The notes: generated by a model not told the origin, from the sequence alone. A stretch of 64,000 nucleotides of DNA from Hyaloraphidium curvatum SAG 235-1 (GCA_025558095.1 JAIVFI010000001.1:186001-250000); one strand, 5' to 3'. Numbered from the stretch's first letter, positions 6,012 to 61,873 are shown. A program made the numbers and translations.

Positions 6012-6260
6012 ATTGAAAAGAGGTGGTTCTAGGCTCTCTTGGTCGTTCAATCTTCTAACTAGGGCGGGCCCAATGAGGTATATTGTCGTCTTTCAGAATG
6101 AGGGCCCTTCGACGATTTGCTCCGCCACTTGGCCCCCCCCTGCTGAGCCGACGCCGCCACGACTCGCCCAACACCCTCTAACTGGGCGTTTGCCTTCGAA
6201 CACTGGCGGCGAAGACCATCTTTCCGTCAGACCCAAGCCGAACGGCGGCCCGCGGCCACG

Positions 6261-43700: not shown

Positions 43701-45298
43701 GCGGCCATGTGCGCGGCGTTCGCGTCGCGCGTGCTGGCGCCGCTGGCGGCTGCGGCGGGGTGGGGGCCCGCCGAGGCGGCGGCGCGGGTGGTGCTGCACG
43801 CCGTGCCGGCGCGCATGTTGGCGCGGGCGGCGCTCGGCTTCTCGCTGCCGCCGCGGGAGGCGGCCTTCGACATGGCGCTGGGGACCTACGAGCGGCTGCG
43901 CCGCCCCGTGCGGCGCGGGCCGGCGGGTGGCGACGACGCCAACTTCTACGCCGCCCGCGCGCCGGCCGTGGTGCTGGGCAACCGCCCGCGGACGCCGCTG
44001 TTTTCCGCCTCGCGCGCGGCGCGGAGGGAGGCCCCTGCGAGCCCGCTCGAGCCGGACCGCGCGGTGCACCTGGGCTACGCCGTGCTGCCCGGGCGCGGGG
44101 CCGCCGTGGGGATGCTCGCGGACGCGTTCGGCGAGATGGCGGAGCCGTTTGCCGTGTGGGCGCCGGCGGAGGAGCTGGCGGGCCATGCGGAGCACGAGGT
44201 GCTGGCGGGCAAGGTGTGGGCCGAGGCGCTGTCGAGGCTCGGTGCCGGGGCGGGGTTCGCGTGGAGGGTCGTGGTGTGCGCGGTAGGGCCTCTGGGAGCC
44301 GAGGAAGTGCTCCGTGGGTGTTTCGTCGATGTGTCGGATTCGGCGCGCGCGGTGCTCACCCCTTTGCGGCAGACTGGAACGATACCATCGCTCCTTGCAT
44401 CCGGACGTGGGAGCAGGACCTGCACAACCCCTGGAGCCCCTCCCACATCCTCGACGAGCAGCCGCGGTTCCCTCCCCTTCAGGACGCCGTGGAGCGCGCC
44501 AACGCCCTGGCCGTCTACCGCAGCATCAACAGCGTCTCGCTGGTTTCCCTCGATCCCCGGCCCGCGCTGCGCGTGTTCCCGCAGCTCGCGCGCGAGCCCG
44601 ATGTCGCGGCGGGGCAGCACCCTTCGACGCCGCCGTCGGCCGTGGACCTGGAGGAGACGCCGCCGGCGACGCCGCACGGGAGGCTTGCTGCGGCGGTCGA
44701 CGCGGTGGCGTCGGACGACGGCGTGGGGTCGGGCATGGAGCAGGTACACGCGCTCATGTGTGTCGGCCGGCGGGTGCCGCCAGACCAACGTGCGGGGGCG
44801 GATCCGGCGCCGGCGCTCGCGACAGGGTGGCTCGTGAGGGTGCCGGGGCCGCAGTTGGAGATGGCGGGGCAGACGACCCAGACCGTGCGGGTGGGTCGGG
44901 TGTTTCGGGCGCCCAAGGCACGTTGGCTGACCCGCATTTCGCGGCAGGTGGACCTCTACTCGCACGCCTCGAACCTCGCCGTCGACGCTGTCGGCACCTG
45001 CTTCCCTGGCTGGCTGCCGCAGCCGGCGGCCGCCAAGCCGGCAGGTCCCGCGGGCGACCACGACGGGGCGGGCTCGGCGCCGGCCCCGAGCCACACGGCT
45101 GTGCTTCGGGACGTCCTGCGGCAGTTCAACGCCCTGCGGTTCCTGGATCCCCGGTCCTTCCGGCCAGCCCCAGTCGTCGGGCGCTCGCTGGGCACGCCGA
45201 GGGCCGGGCGCGAGGACCTGCTGCCGTTCCATCTGAGGGCCGTGGAGCGACTGCGCTGGGGCGTGGAGCAGCTTCCGGCCGACGCGTTCGGGACGTAG
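40703..45298 (+). CDS. MED13: Mediator subunit 13 (Med13/Srb9)-like, multi-exon
   Basis: N-terminal SDTNAFLI; DDEFDFFE; VHLGYAV; C-terminal PALATGWLV...VLRDVLRQFNALRFL...LLPFHLRAVERL, resembling Med13_C. Confidence 0.65.
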
Positions 45299-45460: not shown

Positions 45461-45746
45461 TGTAGGCTTGGGTTGGTCGATTGGGGTAAGAAGGCGGTTC
45501 CAGTCCCCAGAAGAGTTCTAGAAAAGTCCAGTAAATGCGGCGAGCGAAGGGGAGTGGCGATGGACGGCGGGGAAGCAGTTGCGAAGGTACAGGACGTTTT
45601 AACTTCTATTTCTATCGACTTCAACTAGGGCGAGTCGGCTAAGGGCGACTGCGCAGCAGTGCTGCGCAGTCGGGACGGCGTCGCAACGGCGTCGCAACGG
45701 CGTCGACGGCGTCGACTCCGCCCTGCCTATATAAAAGCGCGGGACA
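45461..45746. repeat. LTR-like segment (TGT...ACA) with TATA box, palindrome and short tandem repeats
   Basis: Begins TGTAGG and ends GGGACA; TATATAAAA at 45728-45736; no flanking TSD. It may be U3 of the downstream gypsy LTR or a separate reverse-oriented LTR fragment. Confidence 0.35.
45646..45716. repeat. Perfect 13-bp inverted repeat followed by ACGGCGTCG(CA) x4
   Basis: CGACTGCGCAGCA-G-TGCTGCGCAGTCG at 45646-45672; then ACGGCGTCGCA ACGGCGTCGCA ACGGCGTCG ACGGCGTCG. Confidence 0.85.
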
Positions 45747-45868
45747 TGTAATCGAAGAATCTTGGTCGCCTCCAACCCCCACGTACTCTCCGTGTCGCTT
45801 CGGCTTCGGCGTGCAGTCCGCCGAGCCCGCACTCTGAGAGCCCTTGGGACGCCCGGAATTTACCCGGA

Positions 45869-48007
45869 ATGGACCCCCCTGACACAGGGCAGGGGCCCAA
45901 TGATGCGGCCGCTCCCGTGGTCCTGCCTGATGGCAAGGTCTCCCCTGCGCTCGCCGCGGCCTCCTCGGAGGCGCTTGCGAATCCCGTCCACTCTTCCCAC
46001 GCTCCCGGCGTCGCTGCCTCTCCTCGCCTCCCTGGCGCGGCAGAGGAGCCCGCGCCGGCCCCCGCTGGTGCTACGGCTCAGCTGACAGGTTCTAAGGAGG
46101 ACGCTGCTGAATCGACCACTGAAATCCGCCCCGCGTCCGCCAACGGCGGCGCCCGGGAGGAGCCGGCTCCGCAGAATCGTCTCCCGAAAGCAACCGCCCC
46201 CGCCACGCGCCTGGGGTCTCGCTCTTTCGCCGCAGCAACGTCGCGCACCTCGCCCGACCGCCCGATTGTTCGTGTCACGGACGGCGCGATGGCGGAGCAT
46301 CTGGCTTCTGCCATGCCTTTCTCGGCGCCCACCAACTACGCCAAGCTCATCGATCGGGTGCAACCGCACGCCAACGGTCGGGGCTACACGCCGGCCTTCA
46401 TTGGGCCTGTCCCCCACTGCCTCATCGACCTCAACGGTGTGCCAAAGGACCGACGGCGCGTCGTCGCCGAAGCCGTGGCGAAGGCGACCTTCCCCACCAC
46501 CGTCTTCACGACCGAGACGCGAGGCTACAACCCGCGTTACTCGCGACTGGACCTCTTCTGTGTTGTTGGTGCTGTCGACGGGGCAGACGCTATCAACGCC
46601 TTGGTGGAGCAGGGGGTGCTGGAGGTCAAGTTCCCAAACGGCCCGACGCGTCGGCTGCGCATCCACCCTGTCTTCAAGGACACGCACGCCGAGCTCAAGA
46701 TCGGGCCCATGATCGTCCCTGGTTCGGTGCACGAGTGCCCGGACTGGTGGGCCCGCCTCTACGCGACTTTCCAGAACCACTATGGGGCCCCTTGCCAAGT
46801 CATTGAAGCGGCTCCCATCTCGGGCACCGACAGCAACGCCTTCTGGCGGGTCACTTTCGACGTCTCGCAGTGCGGGGTTGATGCCTTCTTTGACCGTGCA
46901 GCACGCATTGGCCCACCCTCGTACTGCTTCCTTGACTCGTGGGGGACACTCCTCCAGCACAAGCTCCTTCGCCCAGCTGTCCGCTATGACAGTAGCAACG
47001 GACAGTGCGGCCACTGCAAGCGCACGGGCGGCCACGTCGGTGACGATGCCACGTGCACCAACTGTGCTTACTGCCCAGACGGTCTCAACCGCATGAATCC
47101 CGGCGCCTTTGCCAGCCCGCAAGCACGCCGTGCGCACGAGGCGGACTGCATTCACAACCCGGCCAACGTACGGCTCTCTCCCCCAACGGTGGAGCCCGCC
47201 ACGACCCCGCGGCTGCCCCCCCTGAGGGAAGAGGTCGTTCCTCCGCATCTGGCTTCCCCCACCGCCCCTGCGGCCAACGAGTGGCTTACAGCTGGGCCGT
47301 CCGGCAAGCGCGCAGGCTCTGCGCCCCCAGCTCTTGCCCAGCCAGTGGCCAAGGCGTCCCACAACAGGTTTTCGGCACTCGGTGGTGGTGGTGCCGGTGC
47401 TTCGGTCGATTGGGGGGAGTCTGACGCCGCCGAAAAGATGGATTTCCATGGTCTTCCCATTTTAGAGCCGGCTGACAAGGATGGGGACGAGGACATGGGT
47501 GGTGCCGACCAGCTGGCCGCTGAGAACGCCATCAGCAGTGCTGCACAGCAGGTTGCAGCCAATACCGCGCTGGAGGATCTGGAGCTTGCTGCTCCCGCAA
47601 TGGAGGGCACGGAATCTGCGATGGAGGAGGATGCCACCGGCTCTGAGGCCTCGGGTGGAAACGACGCCGCCTCCGAAGCCTCTGCTGAGGGCGATGGTTC
47701 GAACTCGGAGGCACCAAGCGAAGACATGCACACGGCCGATGAGGCCGCTGGGGCATCCGCGGTTGGTGATCCTACGATGGCCCCAGGCCCCAAGCACGCA
47801 GGCAAGGGCCGTCCCGTGGAGGATGTGGCAGGGACAAACCCGGACAAGGTTGCCAAGCCGTATCAGCAAATCGACGTCAAATCCGCCAAAGCGGAACGGA
47901 AGGCCAAGGCGGCCGTTCGCAAGCTCGGCTCCCCCCAGGCCAAGGCCGCCTCCACGTCAACCGGATCCCTGCTGCCGGCTCCTGGCTCACCGTCCTTGAA
48001 TGCCTAA
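45869..48007 (+). CDS. ORF1, gag-like nucleic-acid-binding protein (copy 1)
   Basis: 712 aa; RSFAAA and NRFSAL motifs typical of LINE ORF1; Cys/His knuckles CGHCKRTGGH...C and CAYC...H...C. Confidence 0.75.
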   Translation: MDPPDTGQGPNDAAAPVVLPDGKVSPALAAASSEALANPVHSSHAPGVAASPRLPGAAEEPAPAPAGATAQLTGSKEDAAESTTEIRPASANGGAREEPAPQNRLPKATAPATRLGSRSFAAATSRTSPDRPIVRVTDGAMAEHLASAMPFSAPTNYAKLIDRVQPHANGRGYTPAFIGPVPHCLIDLNGVPKDRRRVVAEAVAKATFPTTVFTTETRGYNPRYSRLDLFCVVGAVDGADAINALVEQGVLEVKFPNGPTRRLRIHPVFKDTHAELKIGPMIVPGSVHECPDWWARLYATFQNHYGAPCQVIEAAPISGTDSNAFWRVTFDVSQCGVDAFFDRAARIGPPSYCFLDSWGTLLQHKLLRPAVRYDSSNGQCGHCKRTGGHVGDDATCTNCAYCPDGLNRMNPGAFASPQARRAHEADCIHNPANVRLSPPTVEPATTPRLPPLREEVVPPHLASPTAPAANEWLTAGPSGKRAGSAPPALAQPVAKASHNRFSALGGGGAGASVDWGESDAAEKMDFHGLPILEPADKDGDEDMGGADQLAAENAISSAAQQVAANTALEDLELAAPAMEGTESAMEEDATGSEASGGNDAASEASAEGDGSNSEAPSEDMHTADEAAGASAVGDPTMAPGPKHAGKGRPVEDVAGTNPDKVAKPYQQIDVKSAKAERKAKAAVRKLGSPQAKAASTSTGSLLPAPGSPSLNA

Positions 48008-48851
48008 AACACCACCAAGCAAGTGGCAACGCCGAGTAGTGGGCTGCTCTTCTCGGCGCCGAGCTCGTCCGGATACCTCCCGGGCGCGGTCAGCCCCTCC
48101 ATCTTTTGCTGTTTTGCAGTCTTCACCGGTACGCCAACTACCACTATCTACAACGTCTCACCGAGTTCCGAGGCCGTTCGCGGCAGCAGGGGAGACTTCC
48201 GACATTGACCCCGCGTCCCCCGGGGCCCCTCGGCCAAATGCCGTGCCTAGCTTGGCCGAGGGTCACACTCTGCCCACGCCGCCCCGCGGCTCCTCCCGCT
48301 TGCCGGCACCAGCGGGGGGGAAAGGGGCGGCATGCTCGGAAGTATCTCCCTCCTCGTCATCGCAGATCTTGATCGCTGATGCCCCGGCTTCGGCCGCTTC
48401 CATGCTCTCGGCGCACCCAGGCCATCCTCCGTGGGAAACCCCAGCTGCAACCGCCGTGCCGAGCTTGCAGCTGCCGCCTGCGCCGCCCCGCACAACCCCC
48501 GGCACGCCGCCGGCACCAACGGCCGGGGGGGGGCAGAGCTCCTCGGAAGTATCCACTCCGACGCGCACCTTGCCTCCTTGGTATGCTCACACGGAGCCCG
48601 GTTCGCCGGCGCACCTCGAATGGCCAGGTTCCGAGCTCCTCGATGACGGCGGCAGTGATGCTATCGGTGACGCGTGGTCGGCGCTTGCGGCCTGGCACAG
48701 GGCGGGGGGCGACCTGACCGAGTCACAGGAGGTTTGGATGCGGACACATGCGCTCGACGATTGGGAGATCTCGTCGGACAAGGCACCGTCCGCGGTAGCT
48801 GATCCTGGCGGCGGGACACCGGCATCGCCGCCGCCACCGTATTCGCCATGA
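48000..48851 (+). CDS. ORF2, Pro-rich 283-aa putative protein (copy 1)
   Basis: Overlaps the ORF1 stop (ATGCCTAA) and the RT ORF start (ATGA); open in both copies. Confidence 0.4.
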   Translation: MPKTPPSKWQRRVVGCSSRRRARPDTSRARSAPPSFAVLQSSPVRQLPLSTTSHRVPRPFAAAGETSDIDPASPGAPRPNAVPSLAEGHTLPTPPRGSSRLPAPAGGKGAACSEVSPSSSSQILIADAPASAASMLSAHPGHPPWETPAATAVPSLQLPPAPPRTTPGTPPAPTAGGGQSSSEVSTPTRTLPPWYAHTEPGSPAHLEWPGSELLDDGGSDAIGDAWSALAAWHRAGGDLTESQEVWMRTHALDDWEISSDKAPSAVADPGGGTPASPPPPYSP

Positions 48852-51800
48852 GCTGCACGCCGCTCCTGCCTTACAGCTGCCACCGCTGCGCGGCAGCTTT
48901 CGCCAACATCGGAGCTCTATCTCATCATCACCAATCTTGCATCGACGGCGATGTGCCGATGGCGGAGGCGCCTGCTGAACCCGGCCTCCATGCGTGCCCG
49001 GTTGATGGTTGCCGCTTCCAGCCAACTCCAAACAAAAACAAACGGGACGGTCATCTTCGGGTCACACGGAGCCCGGAGCACTGGTTGGCGATGCAGCGCC
49101 TGTCTGCCGATGCGTTGCGCGCCATGGGGCTAGCGCGGTGCGGGGGTTGCCGGCGTCCCTACGCCGCAAACGCCTCTGGTGCCGGTGTTTCTGGACAGCA
49201 CACCTCGTGCAACCCGGACGCAGCTAACCCGCCACTCGGCGTCTCTTTAGCTTCGCTTCCACCCGATCTCGTCGAGTTCCTCGACCGCGTGCGTGCCGAG
49301 CGGGCGGCTGCCACGGGACGCGCGGAGGGACCGGCGTCACCAGCGGCATCGTCGGCATCTCCCCGTGCTTCGCCACCCGCGCCCGCGCTGATGGCGGCCC
49401 TTGCGGCCGCCCGGGTTGCGGCCGACGCCCCGCAGGACGGCCAGGCGCAACGGGCGGCGCTGGCGGCGGCGGCGGCGGCGGCGCGTGCCGCCCCGGACGG
49501 CGGTGATCCCCCAGGCGGCGACGGCGCGCCGGGCGGCAACGCTGCGGCTGGCGGGCACGGCAACGGCGGTGATCCGGGCGACCCGGGCGACGGTGGTCCA
49601 CCCGGGGGTCCCGGGCCTGATCCGCCGCCGGGCGGGGGCGCGGGGGCGCCGCCGCCGGAGCCGCTGAAGCACCGCTACCGGACCACCACCTGGAGCACGC
49701 TCGCCTTCCGGGCCAGCGAGTCTTTCCAACGGGCCTACGAGGACCCGGCGGCACCGGAAACCGACCTGCACCGCACTCTCACCGCCTACCTTGCGTTTGG
49801 CGGCTACGTCATGTCGGGGGACTACATGTACGAGCAGAACTACTTCGCCGCCCGTCAGGTCAACCGGGGCGCGCGGCGGGACGGGCTGCGGCCGCTCAAC
49901 TACCAGCTCTTCAAGTCCATCGTGCTTGCCGCCTTGAAGGGCGCTCCTGGTGCTGCGTCCGCGGCCCTCTCGGGGGAGGCCGTTCCGGCTGGCTTCACGC
50001 CCACGCTTCAGGCGGAACTGGAGGAGCTGTACCCGGGGCCGCGGGAGGGAGAGCCGCTGTGTCGGCTGTCTCTGCCCCCCAACGCGCCCGCGCCCTGCCC
50101 TGCCTACACGGACGCGGCTTTCCTGGAGGACATCTGGGCCCGGTTGCGCCGGAAGAAGGACGGCGTGGGGGCCGGCATGTCGGGTTTCAGCATGGCCAAA
50201 CTTTTCATCGTGCACAACTGCGAGAACGACGCGACGCGGCGGAAGCTCCGCCCGCTGGCGGCCATGGTGCATGGCGTGTGCACTGGCCGACTCGACACCC
50301 CCATGCTCCGGCCGCTCCTCACGGATCAAATCCTCGTCCCTCTGCTCAAGCCGGAGGGGGGGCTCCGGCCGATTGGCATTATGGAGGGCATCACGCGGCT
50401 CGCGGGCTCGTACCTGGCCGTGCGGCACAAGGCTCTTCTGAGGAAGCTCCAACAGCAGGAGGACCTGGGTCACGGGGTGGACGGGGGCGCGGAGGCGACC
50501 GCCCACGCGGTGAACGCGTGGCTGGCGGCCTTCCCCGACCACGTCGTCATGAAGGTCGACTCTAGGAACGCCTTCAATACGCTGCGCCGCCTCTTCGCGC
50601 GCGAGGTGGTCCGCCAGGTGCCTCAGCTTATCCCGTACTACAACCTCGTTTACTCGCGCCCTTCCCACGCCTACTTCCGCGACCGGCGCTCGGCGGAGCT
50701 CCTTTTCCGGATCACCATGTACGAGGGCAACATCCAGGGCGACCCGCTGTCGTCTGCCATCTTCTCCTGCGCCATGAGCCGCATGCTGCGGCCCATCCGC
50801 TCTGGGCACCCCGACTGCCTCATCCTTGGGTACCTCGACGACCTCACCGTGGTCGGGCCGCTGGACTCGGTCATGGCCGTCCTGGGAGAGGTGCGTGACG
50901 GCCTTTCTTCCCTCGGCATGACCCACCGCCCGGACAAGAGCTACCTGCTTTCGCTCTCGACGAACCCGGCCGTGCTGGAGCGGGTGCGCGCGGCCGGTGC
51001 GGCCCACAACATCCGCGTCGCTGGCTTCCCGCCTCACGAGGCCGACCCCGAGGTGCATGCCACGGCGTCGGCCCCGGGCTCGCCTGACTTCGCTCGCTCG
51101 TGCGGCCTCAAGGTGGTAGGTGCCCCGGTCGGCACCCCTGCCTATGTGGAGTCGTTCCTCGCGGCCAAGATCGACTCCATTGCCGCTCTTCTCGATGAAA
51201 TCGAGCGCGCCGCGCTCGGCTACGCCATGCCGGCCGACATCCCCTCCCTCCAGGGCCTGTACTCCCTCCTCCGTCTCTGTGTGACCCAGCTCTTCTCGTT
51301 TTGGCTCCGCATTCTCCCCCCCTCGGTTACCCAACCCTTTGCTCGACGTCTTGACAACGCGCTTTTCACCACCTTCTTGCGCTTGCTGGGAGATCGGGCC
51401 GAGGATCTGGATCCGCTGTCGGTGGAGGGTCGGACTGTGCGGGAGCAGGTATTCTTGGGTCTGCACTACTCGGGGATGGGGCTTCTGTCATCGGAGAAGG
51501 TGGCCTCGGCGGCTTACCTGTCTTCACTCAACCTCACGGCGGGCCCCTTGGACGCCATGCTTGGTCTTCGAACCTCGGCCCGGGGTGTGGGCGTGGAGCA
51601 CGTGCGGGAACTGGTTCCCGTCATCGAGGCCCTCCGCCCCGCCTTTGAGCGTGTCGAGGATGACACGGCCGCAGCGTACGCCGAGGCTGCGCGTGCTGGG
51701 CAACCGGTGGGCGCCGCGCCCGCCCGCCGTACGCTCCCTGCGGACGCCAGTTTCTTCGCTCAGCCGGTCTGGCACGGCCTGCAGAGCGACCTTACGCGTC

Positions 51801-52758
51801 TCGAGGACCAGCGCCGCCTCGCGGCTCTGATTGCCTTGCAACCCGACACTTCCGCTGGTCTGGAGCGCCGCAAGCGGCTCGTCCAGGCGCAGGACGGCCT
51901 GTCGGCTTTCCTGACTGCCTCTCCCGCGCTGCTTGCCAACCACATTCGCAACAACTTTTTCCGCTTACTTGTACGCTTCCGGCTTTGCCTCCCGCTCCTG
52001 CACGAGGCCGACTACCCTGGCTTTCCTTGCCCTGCCGGCGGGGCTGCAAGCGATCGGCCATGTCGCTGACGGGGGAGCACGCGTTCTCGGGCTGCTATGG
52101 CCGGGATCTCTTCAGTCCTGGTCACGACGACATTTGCGCGGCCATCCGCGCGGCGCTTCGCTCCATCCCGCTCCTCCGCGTGCACCCCATGCCGCCAAAC
52201 CTCCTTGCGCATGGCTACGAGACTGTCACCCCGCCCACGCCTGCGGATGCTGGCCGCCTTGGCGACATTCTCATCACGCACCGCGAAACCCGGAAACGGT
52301 GGTTGCTCGAGATCAAGACCCTCACCTCTATGGCCCATTTGCACACGGGCCTGGTCTTCTCGGTCCCGGGCCACGCAGTCGAACGGCGGGTCGAGGCCGC
52401 CAGGAAGGACTACTCCCGTTTCGTCTTCAACGCCAACTTCTACCCTCTGATCGTGCTTGCTTTTGATTCGTACAGCGCTGTCTCTGCCACTTTCTCGCGC
52501 TTCTCCTCGGAGATGGGGCGCATCCAGTATCCCGGGATCGTCGGCCGCGATGGGCAGCCCGTGGACCTCGATGGCCTTTACTCTCGTTTTGTGCGGCGCT
52601 TCCGCGAACGGATCGCGGTGGCCTGGGCTCTTGGCGTCGCGGCCCAACTCCAACACTGGCTTCAGCTGTGCACCGAAGCCGCCGCTGTCAACGCTCCGGC
52701 CCCCGCGCCGGTCGCTTTTGGTTTGAATGTAGATGAGGAGCTGATTCTTGGGGCGTAG
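48848..52758 (+). pseudogene. Zinc finger-RT-RLE polyprotein (copy 1), frameshifted at about 52021
   Basis: CTGGCTTTCC here versus CTGGCCTTTCC in copy 2. The 1-bp deletion disconnects the endonuclease domain. Confidence 0.85.
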
Positions 52759-52834
52759 GGGGATTTCTAAGTGTACGGTGGGATTGCTAGCTCCTCATTA
52801 CACACACGGGACGCCCGTCAGTCGTCAACACAGT

Positions 52835-54973
52835 ATGGACCCCCCTGACACAGGGCAGGGGCCCAATGATGCGGCCGCTCCCGTGGTCCTGCCTGATGGC
52901 AAGGTCTCCCCTGCGCTCGCCGCGGCCTCCTCGGAGGCGCTTGCGAATCCCGTCCACTCTTCCCACGCTCCCGGCGTCGCTGCCTCTCCTCGCCTCCCTG
53001 GCGCGGCAGAGGAGCCCGCGCCGGCCCCCGCTGGTGCTACGGCTCAGCTGACAGGTTCTAAGGAGGACGCTGCTGAATCGACCACTGAAATCCGCCCTGC
53101 GTCCGCCAACGGCGGCGCCCGGGAGGAGCCGGCTCAGCACAATCGTCTCCCGAAAGCAACCGCCCCCGCCACGCGCCTGGGGTCTCGCTCTTTCGCCGCA
53201 GCAACGTCGCGCACCTCGCCCGACCGCCCGATTGTTCGTGTCACGGACGGCGCGATGGCGGAGCATCTGGCTTCTGCCATGCCTTTCTCGGCGCCCACCA
53301 ACTACGCCAAGCTCATCGATCGGGTGCAACCGCACGCCAACGGTCGGGGCTACACGCCGGCCTTCATTGGGCCTGTCCCCCACTGCCTCATCGACCTCAA
53401 CGGTGTGCCAAAGGACCGACGGCGCGTCGTCGCCGAAGCCGTGGCGAAGGCGACCTTCCCCACCACCGTCTTCACGACCGAGACGCGAGGCTACAACCCG
53501 CGTTACTCGCGACTGGACCTCTTCTGTGTTGTTGGTGCTGTCGACGGGGCAGACGCTATCAACGCCTTGGTGGAGCAGGGGGTGCTGGAGGTCAAGTTCC
53601 CAAACGGACCGACGCGTCGGCTGCGCATCCACCCTGTCTTCAAGGACACGCACGCCGAGCTCAAGATCGGGCCCATGATCGTCCCTGGTTCGGTGCACGA
53701 GTGCCCGGACTGGTGGGCCCGCCTCTACGCGACTTTCCAGAACCACTATGGGGCCCCTTGCCAAGTCATTGAAGCGGCTCCCATCTCGGGCACCGACAGC
53801 AACGCCTTCTGGCGGGTCACTTTCGACGTCTCGCAGTGCGGGGTTGATGCCTTCTTTGACCGCGCAGCACGCATTGGCCCACCCTCGTACTGCTTCCTTG
53901 ACTCGTGGGGGACGCTCCTCCAGCACAAGCTCCTTCGCCCAGCTGTCCGCTATGACAGTAGCAACGGACAGTGCGGCCACTGCAAGCGCACGGGCGGCCA
54001 CGTCGGTGACGATGCCACGTGCACCAACTGTGCTTACTGCCCAGACGGTCTCAACCGCATGAATCCCGGCGCCTTTGCCAGCCCGCAAGCACGCCGTGCA
54101 CACGAGGCGGACTGCATTCACAACCCGGCCAACGTACGGCTCTCTCCCCCAACGGTGGAGCCCGCCACGACCCCACGGCTGCCCCCCCTGAGGGAAGAGG
54201 TCGTTCCTCCGCATCTGGCTTCCCCCACCGCCCCTGCGGCCGACGAGTGGCTTACAGCTGGGCCGTCCGGCAAGCGCGCAGGCTCTGCGCCCCCAGCTCT
54301 TGCCCAGCCAGTGGCCAAGGCGTCCCACAACCGGTTTTCGGCACTTGGTGGTGGTAGTGCCGGTGCTTCGGTCGATTGGGGGGAGTCTGACGCCGCCGAA
54401 AAGATGGATTTCCATGGTCTTCCCATTTTGGAGCCGGCTGACAAGGATGGGGACGAGGACATGGGTGGTGCCGACCAGCTGGCCGCTGAGATCGCCATCA
54501 GCAGTGCTGCACAGCAGGTTGCAGCCAATACCGCGCTGGAGGATCTGGAGCTTGCTGCTCCCGCAATGGAGGGCACGGAATCTGCGATGGAGGAGGATGC
54601 CACCGGCTCTGAGGCCTCGGGTGGAAACGACGCTGCCTCCGAAGCCTCTGCTGAGGGCGATGGTTCGAACTCGGAGGCACCAAGCGAAGACATGCACACG
54701 GCCGATGAGGCCGCTGGGGCATCCGCGGTTGGTGATCCTACGATGGCCCCAGGCCCCAAGCACGCAGGCAAGGGCCGTCCCGTGGAGGATGTGGCAGGGA
54801 CAAACCCGGACAAGGTTGCCAAGCCGTATCAGCAAATCGACGTCAAATCCGCCAAAGCGGAACGGAAGGCCAAGGCGGCCGCTCGCAAGCCCGGCTCCCC
54901 CCAGGCCAAGGCCACCTCCATGTCAACCGGATCCCTGCTGCCGGCTCCTGGCTCACCGTCCTTGAATGCCTAA
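52835..54973 (+). CDS. ORF1, gag-like protein (copy 2)
   Basis: Near-identical to 45869-48007. Confidence 0.75.
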   Translation: MDPPDTGQGPNDAAAPVVLPDGKVSPALAAASSEALANPVHSSHAPGVAASPRLPGAAEEPAPAPAGATAQLTGSKEDAAESTTEIRPASANGGAREEPAQHNRLPKATAPATRLGSRSFAAATSRTSPDRPIVRVTDGAMAEHLASAMPFSAPTNYAKLIDRVQPHANGRGYTPAFIGPVPHCLIDLNGVPKDRRRVVAEAVAKATFPTTVFTTETRGYNPRYSRLDLFCVVGAVDGADAINALVEQGVLEVKFPNGPTRRLRIHPVFKDTHAELKIGPMIVPGSVHECPDWWARLYATFQNHYGAPCQVIEAAPISGTDSNAFWRVTFDVSQCGVDAFFDRAARIGPPSYCFLDSWGTLLQHKLLRPAVRYDSSNGQCGHCKRTGGHVGDDATCTNCAYCPDGLNRMNPGAFASPQARRAHEADCIHNPANVRLSPPTVEPATTPRLPPLREEVVPPHLASPTAPAADEWLTAGPSGKRAGSAPPALAQPVAKASHNRFSALGGGSAGASVDWGESDAAEKMDFHGLPILEPADKDGDEDMGGADQLAAEIAISSAAQQVAANTALEDLELAAPAMEGTESAMEEDATGSEASGGNDAASEASAEGDGSNSEAPSEDMHTADEAAGASAVGDPTMAPGPKHAGKGRPVEDVAGTNPDKVAKPYQQIDVKSAKAERKAKAAARKPGSPQAKATSMSTGSLLPAPGSPSLNA

Positions 54974-55817
54974 AACACCACCAAGCAAGTGGCAACGCCG
55001 AGTAGTGGGCTGCTCTTCTCGGCGCCGAGCTCGTCCGGATACCTCCCGGGCGCGGTCAGCCCCTCCATCTTTTGCTGTTTTGCAGTCTTCACCGGTACGC
55101 CAACTACCACTATCTACAACGTCTCACCGAGTTCCGAGGCCGTTCGCGGCAGCAGGGGAGACTTCCGACATTGACCCCGCGTCCCCCGGGGCCCCTCGGC
55201 CAAATGCCGTGCCTAGCTTGGCCGAGGGTCACACTCTGCCCACGCCGCCCCGCGGCTCCTCCCGCTTGCCGGCACCAGCGGGGGGGAAAGGGGCGGCACG
55301 CTCGGAAGTATCTCCCTCCTCGTCACCGCCGATCTTGATCGCTGATGCCCCGGCTTCGGCCGCTTCCATGCTCCCGGCGCACCCAGGCCATCCTCCGTGG
55401 GAAACCCCAGCTGCAACCGCCGTGCCGAGCTTGCAGCTGCCGCCTGCGCCGCCCCGCACAACCCCCGGCACGCCGCCGGCACCAACGGCCGGGGGGGGGC
55501 AGAGCTCCTCGGAAGTATCCACTCCGACGCGCACCTTGCCTCCTTGGTATGCTCACACGGAGCCCGGTTCGCCGGCGCACCTCGAATGGCCAGGTTCCGA
55601 GCTCCTCGATGACGGCGGCCGTGATGCTATCGGTGACGCGTGGTCGGCGCTTGCGGCCTGGCACAGGGCGGGGGGCGACCTGACCGAGTCACAGGAGGTT
55701 TGGATGCGGACACATGCGCTCGACGATTGGGATATCTCGTCGGACAAAGCACCGTCCGCGGTAGCTGATCCTGGCGGCGGGACACCGGCATCGCCGCCGC
55801 CACCGTATTCGCCATGA
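54966..55817 (+). CDS. ORF2, Pro-rich putative protein (copy 2)
   Basis: Same length and overlaps as in copy 1. Confidence 0.4.
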   Translation: MPKTPPSKWQRRVVGCSSRRRARPDTSRARSAPPSFAVLQSSPVRQLPLSTTSHRVPRPFAAAGETSDIDPASPGAPRPNAVPSLAEGHTLPTPPRGSSRLPAPAGGKGAARSEVSPSSSPPILIADAPASAASMLPAHPGHPPWETPAATAVPSLQLPPAPPRTTPGTPPAPTAGGGQSSSEVSTPTRTLPPWYAHTEPGSPAHLEWPGSELLDDGGRDAIGDAWSALAAWHRAGGDLTESQEVWMRTHALDDWDISSDKAPSAVADPGGGTPASPPPPYSP

Positions 55818-58800
55818 GCCGCACGCCGCTCCTGCCTTACAGCTGCCACCGCTGCGCGGCAGCTTTCGCCAACATCGGAGCTCTATCTCTTCATCACCAA
55901 TCTTGCATCGACGGCGATGTGCCGATGGCGGAGGCGCCTGCTGAACCCGGCCTCCATGCGTGCCCGGTTGATGGTTGCCGCTTCCAGCCAACTCCAAACA
56001 AAAACAAACGGGACGGTCATCTTCGGGTTACACGGAGCCCGGAGCACTGGTTGGCGATGCAGCGCCTGTCTGCCGATGCGTTGCGCGCCATGGGGCTCGC
56101 GCGGTGCGGGGGTTGCCGGCGTCCCTACGCCGCAAACGCCTCTGGTGCCGGTGTTTCTGGACAGCACACCTCGTGCAACCCGGACGCAGCTAACCCGCCA
56201 CTCGGCGTCTCTTTAGCTTCGCTTCCACCCGATCTCGTCGAGTTCCTCGACCGCGTGCGTGCCGAGCGGGCGGCTGCCACGGGACGCGCGGAGGGACCGG
56301 CGTCACCGGCGGCATCGTCGGCATCTCCCCGTGCTTCGCCACCCGCGCCCGCGCTGATGGCGGCCCTTGCGGCCGCCCGGGTTGCGGCCGACGCCCCGCA
56401 GGACGTCCAGGCGCAACGGGCGGCGCTGGCGGCGGCGGCGGCGGCGGCGCGTGCCGCCCCGGACGGCGGTGATCCCCCAGGCGGCGACGGCGCGCCGGGC
56501 GGCAACGCCGCGGCTGGCGGGCACGGCAACGGCGGTGATCCGGGCGACCCAGGCGACGGTGGTCCACCCGGGGGTCCCGGGCCTGATCCGCCGCCGGGCG
56601 GGGGCGCGGGGGCGCCGCCGCCGGAGCCGCTGAAGCACCGCTACCGGACCACCACCTGGAGCACGCTCGCCTTCCGGGCCAGCGAGTCTTTCCAACGGGC
56701 CTACGAGGACCCGGCGGCACCGGAAACCGACCTGCACCGCACTCTCACCGCCTACCTTGCGTTTGGCGGCTACGTCATGTCGGGGGACTACATGTACGAG
56801 CAGAACTACTTCGCCGCCCGTCAGGTCAACCGGGGCGCGCGGCGGGACGGGCTGCGGCCGCTCAACTACCAGCTCTTCAAGTCCATCGTGCTTGCCGCCT
56901 TGAAGGGCGCTCCTGGTGCTGCGTCCGCGGCCCTCTCGGGGGAGGCCGTTCCGGCTGGCTTCACGCCCACGCTTCAGGCGGAACTGGAGGAGCTGTACCC
57001 GGGGCCGCGGGAGGGAGAGCCGCTGTGTCGGCTGTCTCTGCCCCCCAACGCGCCCGCGCCCTGCCCCGCCTACACGGACGCGGCTTTCCTGGAGGACATC
57101 TGGGCCCGGTTGCGCCGGAAGAAGGACGGCGTGGGGGCCGGCATGTCGGGTTTCAGCATGGCCAAACTTTTCATCGTGCACAACTGCGAGAACGACGCGA
57201 CGCGACGGAAGCTCCGCCCGCTGGCGGCCATGGTGCACGGCGTGTGCACTGGCCGACTCGACACCCCCATGCTCCGGCCGCTCCTCACGGATCAAATCCT
57301 CGTCCCTCTGCTCAAGCCGGAGGGGGGGCTCCGGCCGATTGGCATTATGGAGGGCATCACGCGGCTCGCGGGCTCGTACCTGGCCGTGCGGCACAAGGCT
57401 CTTCTGAGGAAGCTCCAACAGCAGGAGGACCTGGGTCACGGGGTGGACGGGGGCGCGGAGGCGACCGCCCACGCGGTGAACGCGTGGCTGGCGGCCTTCC
57501 CCGACCACGTCGTCATGAAGGTCGACTCTAGGAACGCCTTCAATACGCTGCGCCGCCTCTTCGCGCGCGAGGTGGTCCGCCAGGTGCCTCAGCTTATCCC
57601 GTACTACAACCTCGTTTACTCGCGCCCTTCCCACGCCTACTTCCGCGACCGGCGCTCGGCGGAGCTCCTTTTCCGGATCACCATGTACGAGGGCAACATC
57701 CAGGGCGACCCGCTGTCGTCTGCCATCTTCTCCTGCGCCATGAGCCGCATGCTGCGGCCCATCCGCTCTGGGCACCCCGACTGCCTCATCCTTGGGTACC
57801 TCGACGACCTCACCGTGGTCGGGCCGCTGGACTCGGTCATGGCCGTCCTGGGAGAGGTGCGTGACGGCCTTGCTTCCCTCGGCATGACCCACCGCCCGGA
57901 CAAGAGCTACCTGCTTTCGCTCTCGACGAACCCGGCCGTGCTGGAGCGGGTGCGCGCGGCCGGTGCGGCCCACAACATCCGCGTCGCTGGCTTCCCGCCT
58001 CACGAGGCCGACCCCGAGGTGCATGCCACGGCGTCGGCCCCGGGCTCGCCTGACTTCGCTCGCTCGTGCGGCCTCAAGGTGGTAGGTGCCCCGGTCGGCA
58101 CCCCTGCCTATGTGGAGTCGTTCCTCGCGGCCAAGATCGACTCCATTGCCGCTCTTCTCGATGAAATCGAGCGCGCTGCGCTCGGCTACGCCATGCCGGC
58201 CGACATCCCCTCCCTCCAGGGCCTGTACTCCCTCCTCCGTCTCTGTGTGACCCAGCTCTTCTCGTTTTGGCTCCGCATTCTCCCCCCCTCGGTTACCCAA
58301 CCCTTTGCTCGACGTCTTGACAACGCGCTTTTCACCACCTTCTTGCGCTTGCTGGGAGATCGGGCCGAGGATCTGGATCCGCTGTCGGTGGAGGGTCGGA
58401 CTGTGCGGGAGCAGGTATTCTTGGGTCTGCACTACTCGGGGATGGGGCTTCTGTCATCGGAGAAGGTGGCCTCGGCGGCTTACCTGTCTTCACTCAACCT
58501 CACGGCGGGCCCCTTGGACGCCATGCTTGGTCTTCGAACCTCGGCCCGGGGTGTGGGCGTGGAGCACGTGCGGGAACTGGTTCCCGTCATCGAGGCCCTC
58601 CGCCCCGCCTTTGAGCGTGTCGAGGATGACACGGCCGCAGCGTACGCCGAGGCTGCGCGTGCTGGGCAACCGGTGGGCGCCGCGCCCGCCCGCCGTACGC
58701 TCCCTGCGGACGCCAGTTTCTTCGCCCAGCCGGTTTGGCACGGCCTGCAGAGCGACCTTACGCGTCTCGAGGACCAGCGCCGCCTCGCGGCTCTGATTGC

Positions 58801-59725
58801 CTTGCAACCCACCACTTCCGCTGGTCTGGAGCGCCGCAAGCGGCTCGTCCAGGCGCAGGACGGCCTGTCGGCTTTCCTGACTGCCTCTCCCGCGCTGCTT
58901 GCCAACCACATTCGCAACAACTTTTTCCGCTTACTTGTACGCTTCCGGCTTTGCCTCCCGCTCCTGTACGAGGCCGACTACCCTGGCCTTTCCTTGCCCT
59001 GCCGGCGGGGCTGCAAGCGATCGGCCATGTCGCTGACGGGGGAGCACGCGTTCTCGGGCTGCTATGGCCGGGATCTCTTCAGTCCTGGTCACGACGACAT
59101 TTGCGCGGCCATCCGCGCGGCGCTTCGCTCCATCCCGCTCCTCCGCGTGCACCCCATGCCGCCAAACCTCCTTGCGCATGGCTACGAGACTGTCACCCCG
59201 CCCACGCCTGCGGATGCTGGCCGCCTTGGCGACGTTCTCATCACGCACCGCGAAACCCGGAAACGGTGGTTGCTCGAGATCAAGACCCTCACCTCTATGG
59301 CCCATTTGCACACGGGCCTGGTCTTCTCGGTCCCGGGCCACGCAGTCGAACGGCGGGTCGAGGCCGCCAGGAAGGACTACTCCCGTTTCGTCTTCAACGC
59401 CAACTTCTACCCTCTGATCGTGCTTGCTTTTGATTCGTACAGCGCTGTCTCTGCCACTTTCTCGCGCTTCTCCTCGGAGATGGGGCGCATCCAGTATCCC
59501 GGGATCGTCGGCCGCGATGGGCAGCCCGTGGACCTCGATGGCCTTTACTCTCGTTTTGTGCGGCGCTTCCGCGAACGGATCGCGGTGGCCTGGGCTCTTG
59601 GCGTCGCGGCCCAACTCCAACACTGGCTTCAGCTGTGCACCGAAGCCGCCGCTGTCAACGCTCCGGCCCCCGCGCCGGTCGCATTTGGTTTGAATGTAGA
59701 TGAGGAGCTGATTCTTGGGGCGTAG
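55814..59725 (+). CDS. Zinc finger-reverse transcriptase-restriction-like endonuclease polyprotein (1303 aa)
   Basis: N-terminal zinc fingers (CHRC..H..C; CPVDGC..H..H; CGGC..H..C). RT motifs LRPIGIME, KVDSRNAFN, QGDPLS and YLDDL. C-terminal C-x3-C...HAFSGC...HDDI...GD(V)LI...LLEIK, a PD-(D/E)xK-type RLE. Confidence 0.92.
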   Translation: MSRTPLLPYSCHRCAAAFANIGALSLHHQSCIDGDVPMAEAPAEPGLHACPVDGCRFQPTPNKNKRDGHLRVTRSPEHWLAMQRLSADALRAMGLARCGGCRRPYAANASGAGVSGQHTSCNPDAANPPLGVSLASLPPDLVEFLDRVRAERAAATGRAEGPASPAASSASPRASPPAPALMAALAAARVAADAPQDVQAQRAALAAAAAAARAAPDGGDPPGGDGAPGGNAAAGGHGNGGDPGDPGDGGPPGGPGPDPPPGGGAGAPPPEPLKHRYRTTTWSTLAFRASESFQRAYEDPAAPETDLHRTLTAYLAFGGYVMSGDYMYEQNYFAARQVNRGARRDGLRPLNYQLFKSIVLAALKGAPGAASAALSGEAVPAGFTPTLQAELEELYPGPREGEPLCRLSLPPNAPAPCPAYTDAAFLEDIWARLRRKKDGVGAGMSGFSMAKLFIVHNCENDATRRKLRPLAAMVHGVCTGRLDTPMLRPLLTDQILVPLLKPEGGLRPIGIMEGITRLAGSYLAVRHKALLRKLQQQEDLGHGVDGGAEATAHAVNAWLAAFPDHVVMKVDSRNAFNTLRRLFAREVVRQVPQLIPYYNLVYSRPSHAYFRDRRSAELLFRITMYEGNIQGDPLSSAIFSCAMSRMLRPIRSGHPDCLILGYLDDLTVVGPLDSVMAVLGEVRDGLASLGMTHRPDKSYLLSLSTNPAVLERVRAAGAAHNIRVAGFPPHEADPEVHATASAPGSPDFARSCGLKVVGAPVGTPAYVESFLAAKIDSIAALLDEIERAALGYAMPADIPSLQGLYSLLRLCVTQLFSFWLRILPPSVTQPFARRLDNALFTTFLRLLGDRAEDLDPLSVEGRTVREQVFLGLHYSGMGLLSSEKVASAAYLSSLNLTAGPLDAMLGLRTSARGVGVEHVRELVPVIEALRPAFERVEDDTAAAYAEAARAGQPVGAAPARRTLPADASFFAQPVWHGLQSDLTRLEDQRRLAALIALQPTTSAGLERRKRLVQAQDGLSAFLTASPALLANHIRNNFFRLLVRFRLCLPLLYEADYPGLSLPCRRGCKRSAMSLTGEHAFSGCYGRDLFSPGHDDICAAIRAALRSIPLLRVHPMPPNLLAHGYETVTPPTPADAGRLGDVLITHRETRKRWLLEIKTLTSMAHLHTGLVFSVPGHAVERRVEAARKDYSRFVFNANFYPLIVLAFDSYSAVSATFSRFSSEMGRIQYPGIVGRDGQPVDLDGLYSRFVRRFRERIAVAWALGVAAQLQHWLQLCTEAAAVNAPAPAPVAFGLNVDEELILGA

Positions 59726-59939
59726 GGGGATTGCTAAGTGTACGGTGGGATTGCTAGCTCCTCATTACAACGACGCCCGTCTCCGGAAACCTTCCGCAAC
59801 GACTTTCCCCGGCCGTTTGCTAAGTATACTCAGCGCCGTTCGCTAATTCACGTACAGGGCCTGCCTGACCCGAAGAGCCGAGCGGGATTCGCGCGCCGGG
59901 TTGGAGCTTCAGGCCCGGTTCTGACCCGGACCGTCGCAC

Positions 59940-59950
59940 TGGTCCGACCT
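59940..59950 (+). promoter_or_regulatory. Candidate tRNA primer-binding site
   Basis: TGGTCCGACCT lies 1 nt after a CA end. It is complementary to a tRNA ending ...AGGTCGGACCA (tRNA-Tyr-like end from memory, unverified). Confidence 0.6.
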
Positions 59951-60106
59951 CCGTGATCCTGCTCTCGGGTCTTCGACACCTCGTTCGACTTCAGTTTCGA
60001 CTTCGATAATCCAAAAACAACTTCGCCTGGCACCGGCGCTTGTCGACTGCCACTTTTTTCTGTCAACCGTATTCCGTCAAGCCAAGTTCATTCCCCTTCG
60101 CTAAAC

Positions 60107-61873
60107 ATGGACCCCGTTCAAGAAGCCGCCCCTCAGCAGGAGGTTCAGCAGCCTCAGGAAGCTAACGATTTGCAGAACAACCCGCAGGCCCAGGCGATCA
60201 TCCAAGCTGCGCAGGCCGCGATCCAGCAAGTCGGCGCCGCCGCCAACGACGTCGCCCAACTCGCCGTACAGCAAGCCGCGCAGCAAGCGGTTGCGGACCA
60301 GCTCGCCGCTCAGCAAGCCGTCATGCAACAGGCAGCGCAGGCGGCCGCCCAGCAAGCCGCCCAGCAAGCCGCCCAGCAAGCCGTCGCCGATCAGCTTGCC
60401 GCTCAGCTCGCGGCGCAACAGACCGCTCAGCAGTTGCCAGCTGCCCAAGTTCAACAGCAAGCCACCGCCGAGCAGCTTGCAGCGCAGCAGCTCCAGCAGC
60501 TCGCCGCACAGCAGCAGGGTCAGCAGGTCGACCAGGCGCAGCAGATCGAGCAAGCCCCGGCTGTCAACGCCGCCGCGGCTGGCCTCCAGCCGCAGCAGTT
60601 CGTTGACGCCGTACGGGCCATCGTCGGCGCCCAGCCGCCGCACGATGGGAACATGGGCCTCCCCCAGGCGGATCGCCAGGGCGGAGCCGCCAAGCTCCCG
60701 GCTCAGCTGCTGCCTGCTTCTGTTCAGCCCTTCGATCCCGCTACGCAGGACCCGGAAGACTTCTTCCGCGACCTCACTACGGTTCTCACGGCGTTCGGCT
60801 CCATCAACAACCTCGTCAAGGTCTTCCCGGTTTTCCTTGGGCCTCTGCCGCGCGCAATGTGGCACAACATCACGCCGCAGAACCGCCCTCCGGACTATCC
60901 CGCGACGGCCACCTATCCTCCGGTGACCCAGAACGATGTGCTTGCCTGGCTACGCTACCACTTCGAGCCCCGCGACGCATCGATGCATTATCGCCGGCAC
61001 TACAACACGATTCAGATGACCAATGATGAGACCCTCGATGCGTTCGTCGCCCGCGTATCCCTGGCCGAGACGCGCTTCCTCTCGCACTGCGGTGATCAGC
61101 TTCCTACCAGGGAAGTGCAAGACAGCGTGGACGGCCAGAACCTGCTCTACGGACTACGCCCGGAGCTACGCGGAAAGGCTCTTGAGCTCCTCGGGGATCA
61201 GCTCATCAACCGCACTTCCGTCACCAAGGTCATCGAGAAGATGCGCACCGTCATACAAGCATCGGGCCCTGCGCAGCCGCGCGACATCCGTTTCCTGGGC
61301 CAGAACTCGATTTCGGAGATTCCGGCCCTGGTCGGCCAGCACTCGTCTTCGGGCTCCTCCAAGGCGACCGACAAGGCGACGACGGAAGTGCTGCTGGCTC
61401 ATACGCAGGCTCTCACAAAACTGCTGGAGCCTAAGGGAGAGCGCAGGCCCACCGGCGGACCGCCGGGGGAGTCTGCGTTCCGGCCTCCGCGCCGTTTCAT
61501 TCCCTTCCAGTCACATCGGAGCCAGCCGTTGCCGCCTTCGGGGCCGAACAGCGACCTCGTCGAGATCAAGGAGCTCATCACCAAGCTGCTGCCGCCGCCT
61601 CGCCATCAGGTTCAGGCCGCGGAGACCAGGTTGAACCCCCCCGCGAGGCCTCCTCCGATCGATCGGCCCCGGCAGCAGCAGGAGCGCCAGGATCGCCGGC
61701 CCTTCACCTCGGAGTACCGCGACCAGAAGCGCTTCCAGCCTCGCCACTGCCATCTCTGTGGCATGGATGGGCATGCGCAGGACGAGTGCTGGGAGCTGGA
61801 GAAGAACGCCAACCGCCGCCCGCTCAACTGGAAGTCTCGCCTCGGCAACACCCCTTCGATGCCAAAAAACTAG
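60107..61873 (+). CDS. gag: Gag of the Ty3/gypsy element
   Basis: Q/A-rich N-terminus; capsid-like QMTNDETLDAFVARV...LLYGLRPELR; CX2CX4HX4C knuckle CHLCGMDGHAQDEC. Confidence 0.9.
   Translation: MDPVQEAAPQQEVQQPQEANDLQNNPQAQAIIQAAQAAIQQVGAAANDVAQLAVQQAAQQAVADQLAAQQAVMQQAAQAAAQQAAQQAAQQAVADQLAAQLAAQQTAQQLPAAQVQQQATAEQLAAQQLQQLAAQQQGQQVDQAQQIEQAPAVNAAAAGLQPQQFVDAVRAIVGAQPPHDGNMGLPQADRQGGAAKLPAQLLPASVQPFDPATQDPEDFFRDLTTVLTAFGSINNLVKVFPVFLGPLPRAMWHNITPQNRPPDYPATATYPPVTQNDVLAWLRYHFEPRDASMHYRRHYNTIQMTNDETLDAFVARVSLAETRFLSHCGDQLPTREVQDSVDGQNLLYGLRPELRGKALELLGDQLINRTSVTKVIEKMRTVIQASGPAQPRDIRFLGQNSISEIPALVGQHSSSGSSKATDKATTEVLLAHTQALTKLLEPKGERRPTGGPPGESAFRPPRRFIPFQSHRSQPLPPSGPNSDLVEIKELITKLLPPPRHQVQAAETRLNPPARPPPIDRPRQQQERQDRRPFTSEYRDQKRFQPRHCHLCGMDGHAQDECWELEKNANRRPLNWKSRLGNTPSMPKN
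61864..61870 (+). promoter_or_regulatory. -1 ribosomal frameshift slippery heptamer A AAA AAC
   Basis: In gag phase immediately before TAG. The -1 frame is open (KKLGLPSVPH...), and a GCCCTC...GGGGGC stem follows. Confidence 0.7.

Follow-up and report, generated by a model that had tools for sequence, protein, structure and literature searches.

A young R2-like retrotransposon family of Hyaloraphidium curvatum that is probably directed by a short, dispersed DNA word

Long interspersed nuclear elements (LINEs), i.e., retrotransposons without long terminal repeats (LTRs), that carry a restriction-like endonuclease (RLE) are usually portrayed as specialists for a single long site of a multicopy gene, e.g., in rDNA, spliced-leader, snRNA, or tRNA genes, telomeres, or microsatellites, and a minority of them as non-specific (PMC4640811). 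RLE LINEs of the HERO clade are mostly non-specific with some microsatellite-specific members, and the same work lists the targets of those LINEs that insert in transposons (PMC4640811). In Entamoeba histolytica, the RLE LINE EhLINE1 shows no targeted insertion; its endonuclease has a preference for GCATT at the nick together with a favourable DNA structure (PMC1635306). Here, we describe an RLE family of Hyaloraphidium curvatum SAG 235-1, two copies of which are nested in one LTR of a Ty3/gypsy retrotransposon inside a 64-kb stretch of DNA that was analyzed as a whole and is called the window below. Judging from its insertion sites, this is very probably a young R2-like family that is directed by the word (T)CTGAGA and would nick 8 bp downstream of it wherever the word occurs. 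A limited literature search found neither an earlier account of an RLE LINE guided by a short dispersed word with a fixed offset nor any paper on Hyaloraphidium retrotransposons. Coordinates without prefix refer to the window, while those with a C prefix refer to contigs of the 31.9-Mb genome assembly.

At least 25 long copies with 98.8-99.8% identity and at least 40 3' ends of the family were listed in the genome; with 67-74 candidates, the 3' ends possibly number about 70. These copies display the hallmarks of target-primed reverse transcription, i.e., a common 3' terminus, no terminal repeats, no poly(A), many 5' truncations, microhomology joints, and target-site duplications (TSDs) of 4-15 bp. 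Their flanks are mostly unrelated to one another and to the LTR, and among those shown, which were not compared with rDNA, nothing recurs besides the LTR site. Around approximately 45 copies we found unrelated sequence or LTRs and neither a spliced-leader gene nor a telomere repeat. What the flanks have in common is (T)CTGAGA or a one- or two-base variant of it, usually at a distance of exactly 8 bp before the TSD begins.

For a quantitative view, empty sites were aligned on the TSD start, which was taken as the bottom-strand (first-strand) nick that primes reverse transcription. CT[G/T]AGA stands at exactly -14 to -9 in 11 of the 13 empty sites that could be reconstructed from their TSDs, usually preceded by T, and with a background frequency of 1.7e-4 per position this corresponds to a binomial p of 3e-40. 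Eight more copies picked from the list of 3' ends regardless of their flanks were read by eye: four have CTGAGA at +8, and the others carry TTGAGA, CTGATC, CTGAAT, or TTGACA at +7 or +8. The TGA core is therefore the most constant part of the word. By manual count, an exact CTGAGA lies no more than 60 nt upstream in 26 of 37 5' flanks (about 0.2 expected), and two further 5' flanks that are present as loose ends in run X1 both read CTGAGA-N8.

The rule also made a successful prediction from coordinates alone, namely that the copy ending at C1:1039228 has the TCTGAGA at C1:1038185 as its target; in the DNA of this locus, the word is indeed followed by an 8-bp spacer, a CCGG TSD, and the element. 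Because TSD lengths vary and the 5' joints are ragged, precision is confined to the first nick. Directly after the nick, (A/G)ACGC is found at 4 of 15 non-LTR sites (p = 1e-4), from which we infer a weak extra preference for this sequence, and at position -7 the non-LTR sites are dominated by G compared to C in the LTR. In the whole genome, TCTGAGA occurs 892 times versus 1,283 times for the reversed control word. This deficit of about 30% relative to one control word could be ordinary k-mer variation as well as target depletion.

The window contains two 6,952-bp copies that, as read directly from the sequence, lie head to tail in a single gypsy LTR in the order ...CTGAGAGCCCTT-GGGACGCCCG-copy 1-GGGACGCCCGTC-copy 2-GACGCCCGTC-TCCGG... 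(Table 1). The original prediction had described them as having 10-bp TSDs offset by 2 bp with unlike 5' junctions and 3' tails, and the sequence is exactly so: a 13-nt leader and an ACACAC tail in copy 1 versus 15 other bases and an AAC tail in copy 2. Pairwise alignment of the two gave 99.3% identity with 47 mismatches and 1 gap. In an alignment of 11 full-length copies, copy 1 differs by 0 substitutions from L003 on contig 27, with which it also shares the 13-nt leader, while copy 2 clusters with L001 and L002 (14-15 differences) at 47-53 differences from the group of copy 1. Because copy 1 equals L003 while 47 positions separate it from its neighbor, the two are separate insertions from two source lineages and a tandem duplication is excluded, just as the proposal of two independent target-primed insertions had it. 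Their junction is bridged with zero differences by a 132-nt contig of the public run X2 (52779-52910), though this run possibly stems from the assembled strain or sample and thus checks the assembly rather than contributing independent biology.

As proposed, the host of this pair is a Ty3/gypsy LTR retrotransposon with identical LTRs (TG..CA), a short TSD, a primer-binding site (PBS), and a reverse transcriptase (RT) followed by RNase H. In Pfam, its pol frame matches RVT_1 and then RT_RNaseH_2, and the gag frame (60107-61873) matches no family. CAGT borders both the 5' LTR start (45580) and the 3' LTR end (C1:255532), so the element arose from one integration event; without the two inserts it spans about 10.0 kb and ends at C1:255532. 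The predicted LTR-like CA end, PBS, and gag downstream of the insertion site are all present: the LTR ends with CA at 59938, 157 bp 3' of the site, and downstream of this end lie a TGG-type PBS and the frames of gag and pol. Likewise, the flanks of the nest proved contiguous in other LTR copies. Their 269 + 159 bp match the 3' LTR without any mismatch (45587-45855 corresponds to C1:255104-255372 at 100% identity), where, as seen in flank searches of the genome, they adjoin with an overlap of the 8 bp GACGCCCG, and the restored empty site CTGAGAGCCCTTGGGACGCCCGTCTCCGG is uninterrupted both in this 3' LTR (C1:255104-255532; L029) and in an LTR on contig 15. Since its LTRs are identical, the gypsy element must be very young and both RLE insertions younger still. 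The 7 nt TGCGAAG with which the 5' LTR and the other LTR copies begin are missing from the 3' LTR (C1:255080-255110), where different bases stand before TACAGGACG. Upstream of the 5' LTR, a frame on the plus strand (43709-45298) with a sub-threshold match to Med13_C (E 5e-5, 23 bits versus a cut-off of 26) is probably a neighboring host gene.

The RLE element itself has three open reading frames (ORFs) of 712, 283, and 1,303 aa that overlap by 8 and 4 nt, an arrangement that suggests coupled translation. All three frames are open at full length in 9 of the 11 full-length copies, while ORF3 of copy 1 stops at 1,073 aa due to a one-base length difference near 52020 that leaves the RLE out of frame. 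In translation, ORF1 shows a globular-looking central region and a Cys/His knuckle-like cluster, and ORF2 is Pro/Ser-rich and of low complexity; a Pfam search found nothing in either of them. ORF3 matches RVT_1 at residues 501-718 (Pfam, E 7e-10). By eye, its N-terminus (residues 10-125) contains a zinc-finger-like C-x2-C-x12-H motif and two more Cys/His clusters, and its C-terminus has a CCHC followed by a PD..ExK / D...E.K nuclease motif, a predicted RLE. The Cys/His, Asp, and Lys columns of these C-terminal motifs show no variation across 10 homologues. An AlphaFold model of ORF3 residues 400-1303 (predicted local distance difference test score, pLDDT, 77) has its best fold matches in the R2 proteins 9nl3, 9dou, and 8gh6, with approximately 930-960 columns including the C-terminus, E-values of 1e-16 to 1e-15, and a template-modelling (TM) score of about 0.5, and LINE-1 ORF2p comes next. 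This fold search was needed because sequence likeness to R2 is too low for phmmer: a sequence search of the PDB with ORF3 gave only weak matches to HIV RT, and R2 was absent among the 60 matches shown. With RVT_1, the C-terminal CCHC and predicted nuclease, and the modelled R2-like fold, the element is an RLE-type non-LTR retrotransposon, as had been suggested from its sequence.

A search for protein homologues returned one relative with 45% identity on a 3.9-kb contig without usable flanks, and a representative search returned 5,116 relatives at about 30% identity. An annotated 232-aa protein of H. curvatum is identical to the ORF3 C-terminus. The 3' untranslated region (UTR) includes TTTCTAAGTG in copy 1 (52745-52775) and TTGCTAAGTG in copy 2 (59700-59745), which resemble the region of the target word in the same sense. 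Furthermore, a 169-nt contig from poly(A) RNA-seq of a freshwater metagenome (run X6) is identical to the ORF1 start (52891-53057).

The 5' ends of the family are lineage-specific rather than absent because leaders are common within lineages. Copies of lineage B (45856-45868 in copy 1; L003, L007, L008, and L010) have a leader of about 13 nt, AATTT(T)ACCCGGA, in front of the ORF1 ATG, while those of lineage A have only AGT in common. A longer leader ending in ...GTCCCTGAGGC is shared by L006 and L019. The most diverged full-length copy, L009 (C19:150821-157745), has 64 nt between a possible TSD, GAAGGGACCGG, and the ATG, and this stretch includes CTGAGA-N8-GAACGCCCGTCTC, which resembles the site in the LTR family of the host element (LTR-X). 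It may be a 5' transduction from a source copy that was transcribed from upstream; the idea that the L009 flanks are a diverged LTR was rejected since they have no homology to the host gypsy. In three runs of the organism (X1-X3; 51800-53800), word depth is 5-10x higher at the 3' end of the element than at its 5' end, as expected because many copies are 5'-truncated.

We propose that the machinery of this family would read (T)CTGAGA and nick the bottom strand at a fixed distance of 8 bp downstream, and that reverse transcription would be primed by this nick at the 3' end of the element (...CTCCTCATTA with a short CA-rich tail). An imprecise second cut of the top strand 4-15 bp further on would then account for the variable TSDs, and the 5' end would frequently be truncated or joined through microhomology. 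By analogy with R2, we infer that the word is read by the N-terminal zinc-finger-like motifs of ORF3, with the RLE cutting at a fixed distance from this module. An occupied site would stay a valid target because the word and spacer upstream survive and the TSD restores the bases after the nick, so that a newcomer would land between the word and the resident copy. In the window, copy 2 of lineage A was probably the first to insert, with copy 1 of lineage B following between TCTGAGA and the resident copy. We rejected the opposite order since it would place copy 2 behind 14 bp of element tail (CATTAC and ACACACGG) in which there is no target word. The LTR would attract insertions simply because an invariant 20-nt block of it happens to hold TCTGAGA with GACGC at +8.

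This block, TCTGAGAGCCCTTGGGACGC, contains 44 of the 892 TCTGAGA words of the genome and is invariant in related gypsy LTRs, i.e., in LTR-X (5 copies) and in two sister families whose identity in the surroundings of the block is only about 72-91%. Occupancy was determined by comparing the coordinates of upstream and downstream LTR parts at approximately 42 independent LTR loci, of which 6 have suffered at least 7 independent events (Table 1) while 36 are without demonstrated occupancy. Among the 40 listed 3' ends, 7 are at the LTR site and represent 5 independent events, and 33 of the 38 independent ends lie outside any LTR. With 5/38 independent ends (ca. 13%), the LTR site is thus hit more often than its 4.9% share of TCTGAGA sites would suggest (p = 0.04). 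LTR-X alone has received 4 events in 3 of its 5 LTRs, and on contigs 1 and 2, for which all sites are listed, 3/5 LTR-X compared to 2/70 non-LTR TCTGAGA sites are occupied (Fisher p = 0.0014). However, the raw excess is not significant when all LTR families are compared with non-LTR sites (Fisher p = 0.10), and the sister families have the same word, spacer, and GACGC, yet only 3 of their approximately 37 loci are occupied. The LTR is therefore a hot spot, chiefly in the form of LTR-X, and not a dedicated target. Something beyond TCTGAGA contributes at LTR-X because its hit rate exceeds what the motif alone predicts, and a combination of the word with a favored nick context may explain part of this excess.

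A number of observations weigh against a family directed by (T)CTGAGA with a fixed offset. Approximately 30% of sites match the word at only 4-5 of 6 positions, L020 and L023 are without any motif or TSD, and the analysis covered about 45 copies out of an estimated 70. A TSD whose first bases are C/A, as in the tail, can be placed only to within 1-3 bp, and here the automatic TSD caller misplaced the boundaries of C1c, C3b, C8, and C32, so that these sites were read by eye. The apparent distance from word to TSD is 6 instead of 8 at copy 1; if the nick occurred at the usual +8, its duplication proper would be GACGCCCG and GG would be junction microhomology. No Pfam zinc-finger family was found in ORF3 at E <= 0.1. 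The excess at LTR-X over the motif expectation is strong (Poisson p = 1e-4 for 4 events in 5 LTRs, given a site occupancy of about 5%), and a favored nick context fails to explain the fewer hits in sister LTRs, though numbers are small.

It is conceivable, though on balance unlikely, that the word is a minimum requirement while the LTR is a preferred and useful niche that could offer transcription from the LTR promoter and leave host genes unharmed. The enrichments at LTR sites in general and LTR-X in particular would fit such a mixed model, as would the sense orientation of the LTR insert about 120 bp 3' of a TATA box (45730), the near absence of a 5' UTR from the elements, and the 64-nt foreign 5' sequence of L009 that looks as if it had been transcribed from upstream of its source's target. 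However, the numbers are small, and the sparsely hit sister LTRs imply that orientation and promoter are insufficient. Moreover, purifying selection against genic insertions in a compact genome would give the same enrichment. A facultative parasite, in which the zinc-finger module reads TCTGAGA, the RLE nicks 8 bp away, and LTRs serve as a favored, promoter-supplying, and harmless niche, seems unlikely to us; the 4 hits in 5 LTR-X and the LTR-like 5' sequence of L009 would be traces of this niche use.

Rather than by a zinc-finger DNA-binding domain, the word could be read by the element RNA or an RNA-protein surface. The 3' UTR of copy 1 does resemble the target TTCTGAGAG and Pfam recognizes no zinc finger, but the UTR motif has the same sense as the target instead of being complementary, it varies between copies (GCTAAG in copy 2), and for R2, PMC10499050 and PMC11204384 describe protein domains as the readers of upstream DNA motifs. 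We therefore regard this alternative as quite improbable. Even less can be said for a hyperparasite with the gypsy LTR as its dedicated multicopy target in the manner of R2 with rDNA or CRE/SLACS with spliced-leader genes, which we consider highly improbable. It draws on the recurrent, independent events at homologous LTR sites (copies 1 and 2, L006, the C22 fragment, C11, C32, and C13), on the three occupied LTR-X, and on the invariance of the block in 44 LTRs. However, most LTR loci are without demonstrated occupancy, and the many insertions outside LTRs share only the short word with them and are unlike the LTR beyond it, e.g., at -7. The original prediction had made the LTR the family's multicopy target and had named unrelated flanks around other copies as the observation that would speak against this, and such flanks are what we found for the majority of independent ends. 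Its RLE type, independent insertions, and gypsy host stand, while the dedicated LTR target gives way to the weaker form of a favored landing pad. That the pair is a tandem duplication or assembly artefact has practically no chance of being true: near-identical 7-kb head-to-tail repeats are a classic source of misassembly, but the 47 differences, the unlike leaders, tails, and TSD registers, the identity of copy 1 with a copy on another contig, and the short-read contig across the junction all speak against it.

Table 1. Features of the nested locus and related loci. Coordinates with a C prefix refer to assembly contigs; all others refer to the window.
Feature	Position	Strand	Remarks
5' LTR, left part	45580-45855	+	begins TGCGAAGG; TATA box 45730; preceded by 4-bp TSD CAGT
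Target word TCTGAGA	45833-45839	+	sole TCTGAGA in the 64-kb window; at the occupied site
8-bp spacer GCCCTTGG	45840-45847	+	directly after TCTGAGA
Left TSD of copy 1, GGGACGCCCG	45846-45855	+	repeated at 52808-52817
Copy 1 (lineage B)	45856-52807	+	3' end ...CTCCTCATTA plus CA-rich tail; 13-nt leader 45856-45868
Copy 1 ORFs	ORF1 45869-48007; ORF2 48000-48851; ORF3 48848-52069	+	from translation
12-bp block GGGACGCCCGTC	52808-52819	+	shared by copy 1 (as right TSD) and copy 2 (as left TSD)
Left TSD of copy 2, GACGCCCGTC	52810-52819	+	repeated as right TSD at 59772-59781
Copy 2 (lineage A)	52820-59771	+	15 extra/leader bases 52820-52834
Copy 2 ORFs	ORF1 52835-54973; ORF2 54966-55817; ORF3 55814-59725	+	from translation
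5' LTR, right part	59780-59938	+	ends ...GTCGCA; 100% identical to C1:255374-255532
Gypsy internal region	59940-64000	+	TGG-type PBS; gag-like frame 60107-61873; pol frame from 61874, past the window end
Occupied LTR locus	this 5' LTR		two events (copies 1 and 2)
Occupied LTR locus	C1:522016		L006, full length
Occupied LTR locus	C22:168111		130-bp fragment, TSD GACGCCCGTC
Occupied LTR locus	C11		1.17-kb fragment in triplicated 11,078-bp unit, scored as one event
Occupied LTR locus	C32		742-bp fragment
Occupied LTR locus	C13:757794		
Reverse-nested locus, L012/L032	C43:361235-378701		element positions ~6111-6114
Reverse-nested locus, L013/L031	C2:162789-176990		element positions ~5959-5962
Reverse-nested locus, L017	C35:437951		element position ~2077

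Nesting also occurs in the reverse direction, with a sister-family gypsy (termini TGCGAAGG...GTCGCA) inside three RLE copies and 4-bp TSDs in two of these cases (Table 1). At C11:510409-535926, three tandem copies of an 11,078-bp unit each include an LTR element with a 1.17-kb RLE fragment in its LTR site as well as a further LTR; this array is a segmental triplication that copied one insertion event.

The family of H. curvatum represents an intermediate that is strongly sequence-directed by a word of 6-7 bp with a fixed 8-bp offset, yet dispersed. As a rough estimate, a few per cent of the 892 TCTGAGA sites in this compact 32-Mb fungal genome are already occupied. The family could thus offer a simple natural system for studying how an R2-like protein couples DNA recognition to the position of the nick, a timely question given the current engineering of R2 proteins for gene insertion. 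It also illustrates a simple origin of tandem arrays and of apparent hyperparasitism, for which it suffices that a target word outlasts each insertion and sits in a conserved LTR block.

Compared with described systems, the family is most similar to R2 in its architecture of RT, linker, CCHC, and RLE with a matching full-length fold (structures 8gh6, 9dou, and 9nl3), in its N-terminal Cys/His motifs, in the proposed recognition of a DNA motif upstream of a fixed first-strand nick, in variable 5' junctions, in the lack of poly(A), and in the possibility of tandem insertions. However, R2 consists of one ORF and inserts at a long and unique site of 28S rDNA, whereas the H. curvatum element has three ORFs and a dispersed 6-7 bp word. 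Protists and fungi are also the hosts of the RLE LINEs of the CRE clade (CRE1/2, SLACS, and CZAR as well as the fungal Cnl1, MoTeR, and FoTeR). These have an N-terminal zinc finger, for which the Cys/His motifs of ORF3 are a candidate counterpart, and in some cases more than one ORF, but they target spliced-leader exons or telomere repeats, in neither of which any examined copy of our family resides. Tx1L in Tx1D is another LINE that is found repeatedly at one site of another mobile element. It has an APE endonuclease and nearly all of its copies lie in the host transposon, unlike the H. curvatum family with only about 1/8 of insertions in an LTR. EhLINE1 shares with our family that it is a dispersed RLE LINE whose sites are chosen by a short sequence, but its preference lies at the nick itself, whereas the conserved word of H. 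curvatum is 8 bp away so that recognition is set apart from cutting. Like the HERO clade, our family consists of RLE LINEs that are not confined to a multicopy gene, though PMC4640811 describes no short word with fixed offset for HERO. Beyond retrotransposons, the arrangement is analogous to type IIS restriction enzymes such as FokI, whose cut lies at a set distance on one side of the short asymmetric word that they recognize, with the difference that the H. curvatum element would cut one strand precisely and use this cut to prime reverse transcription.

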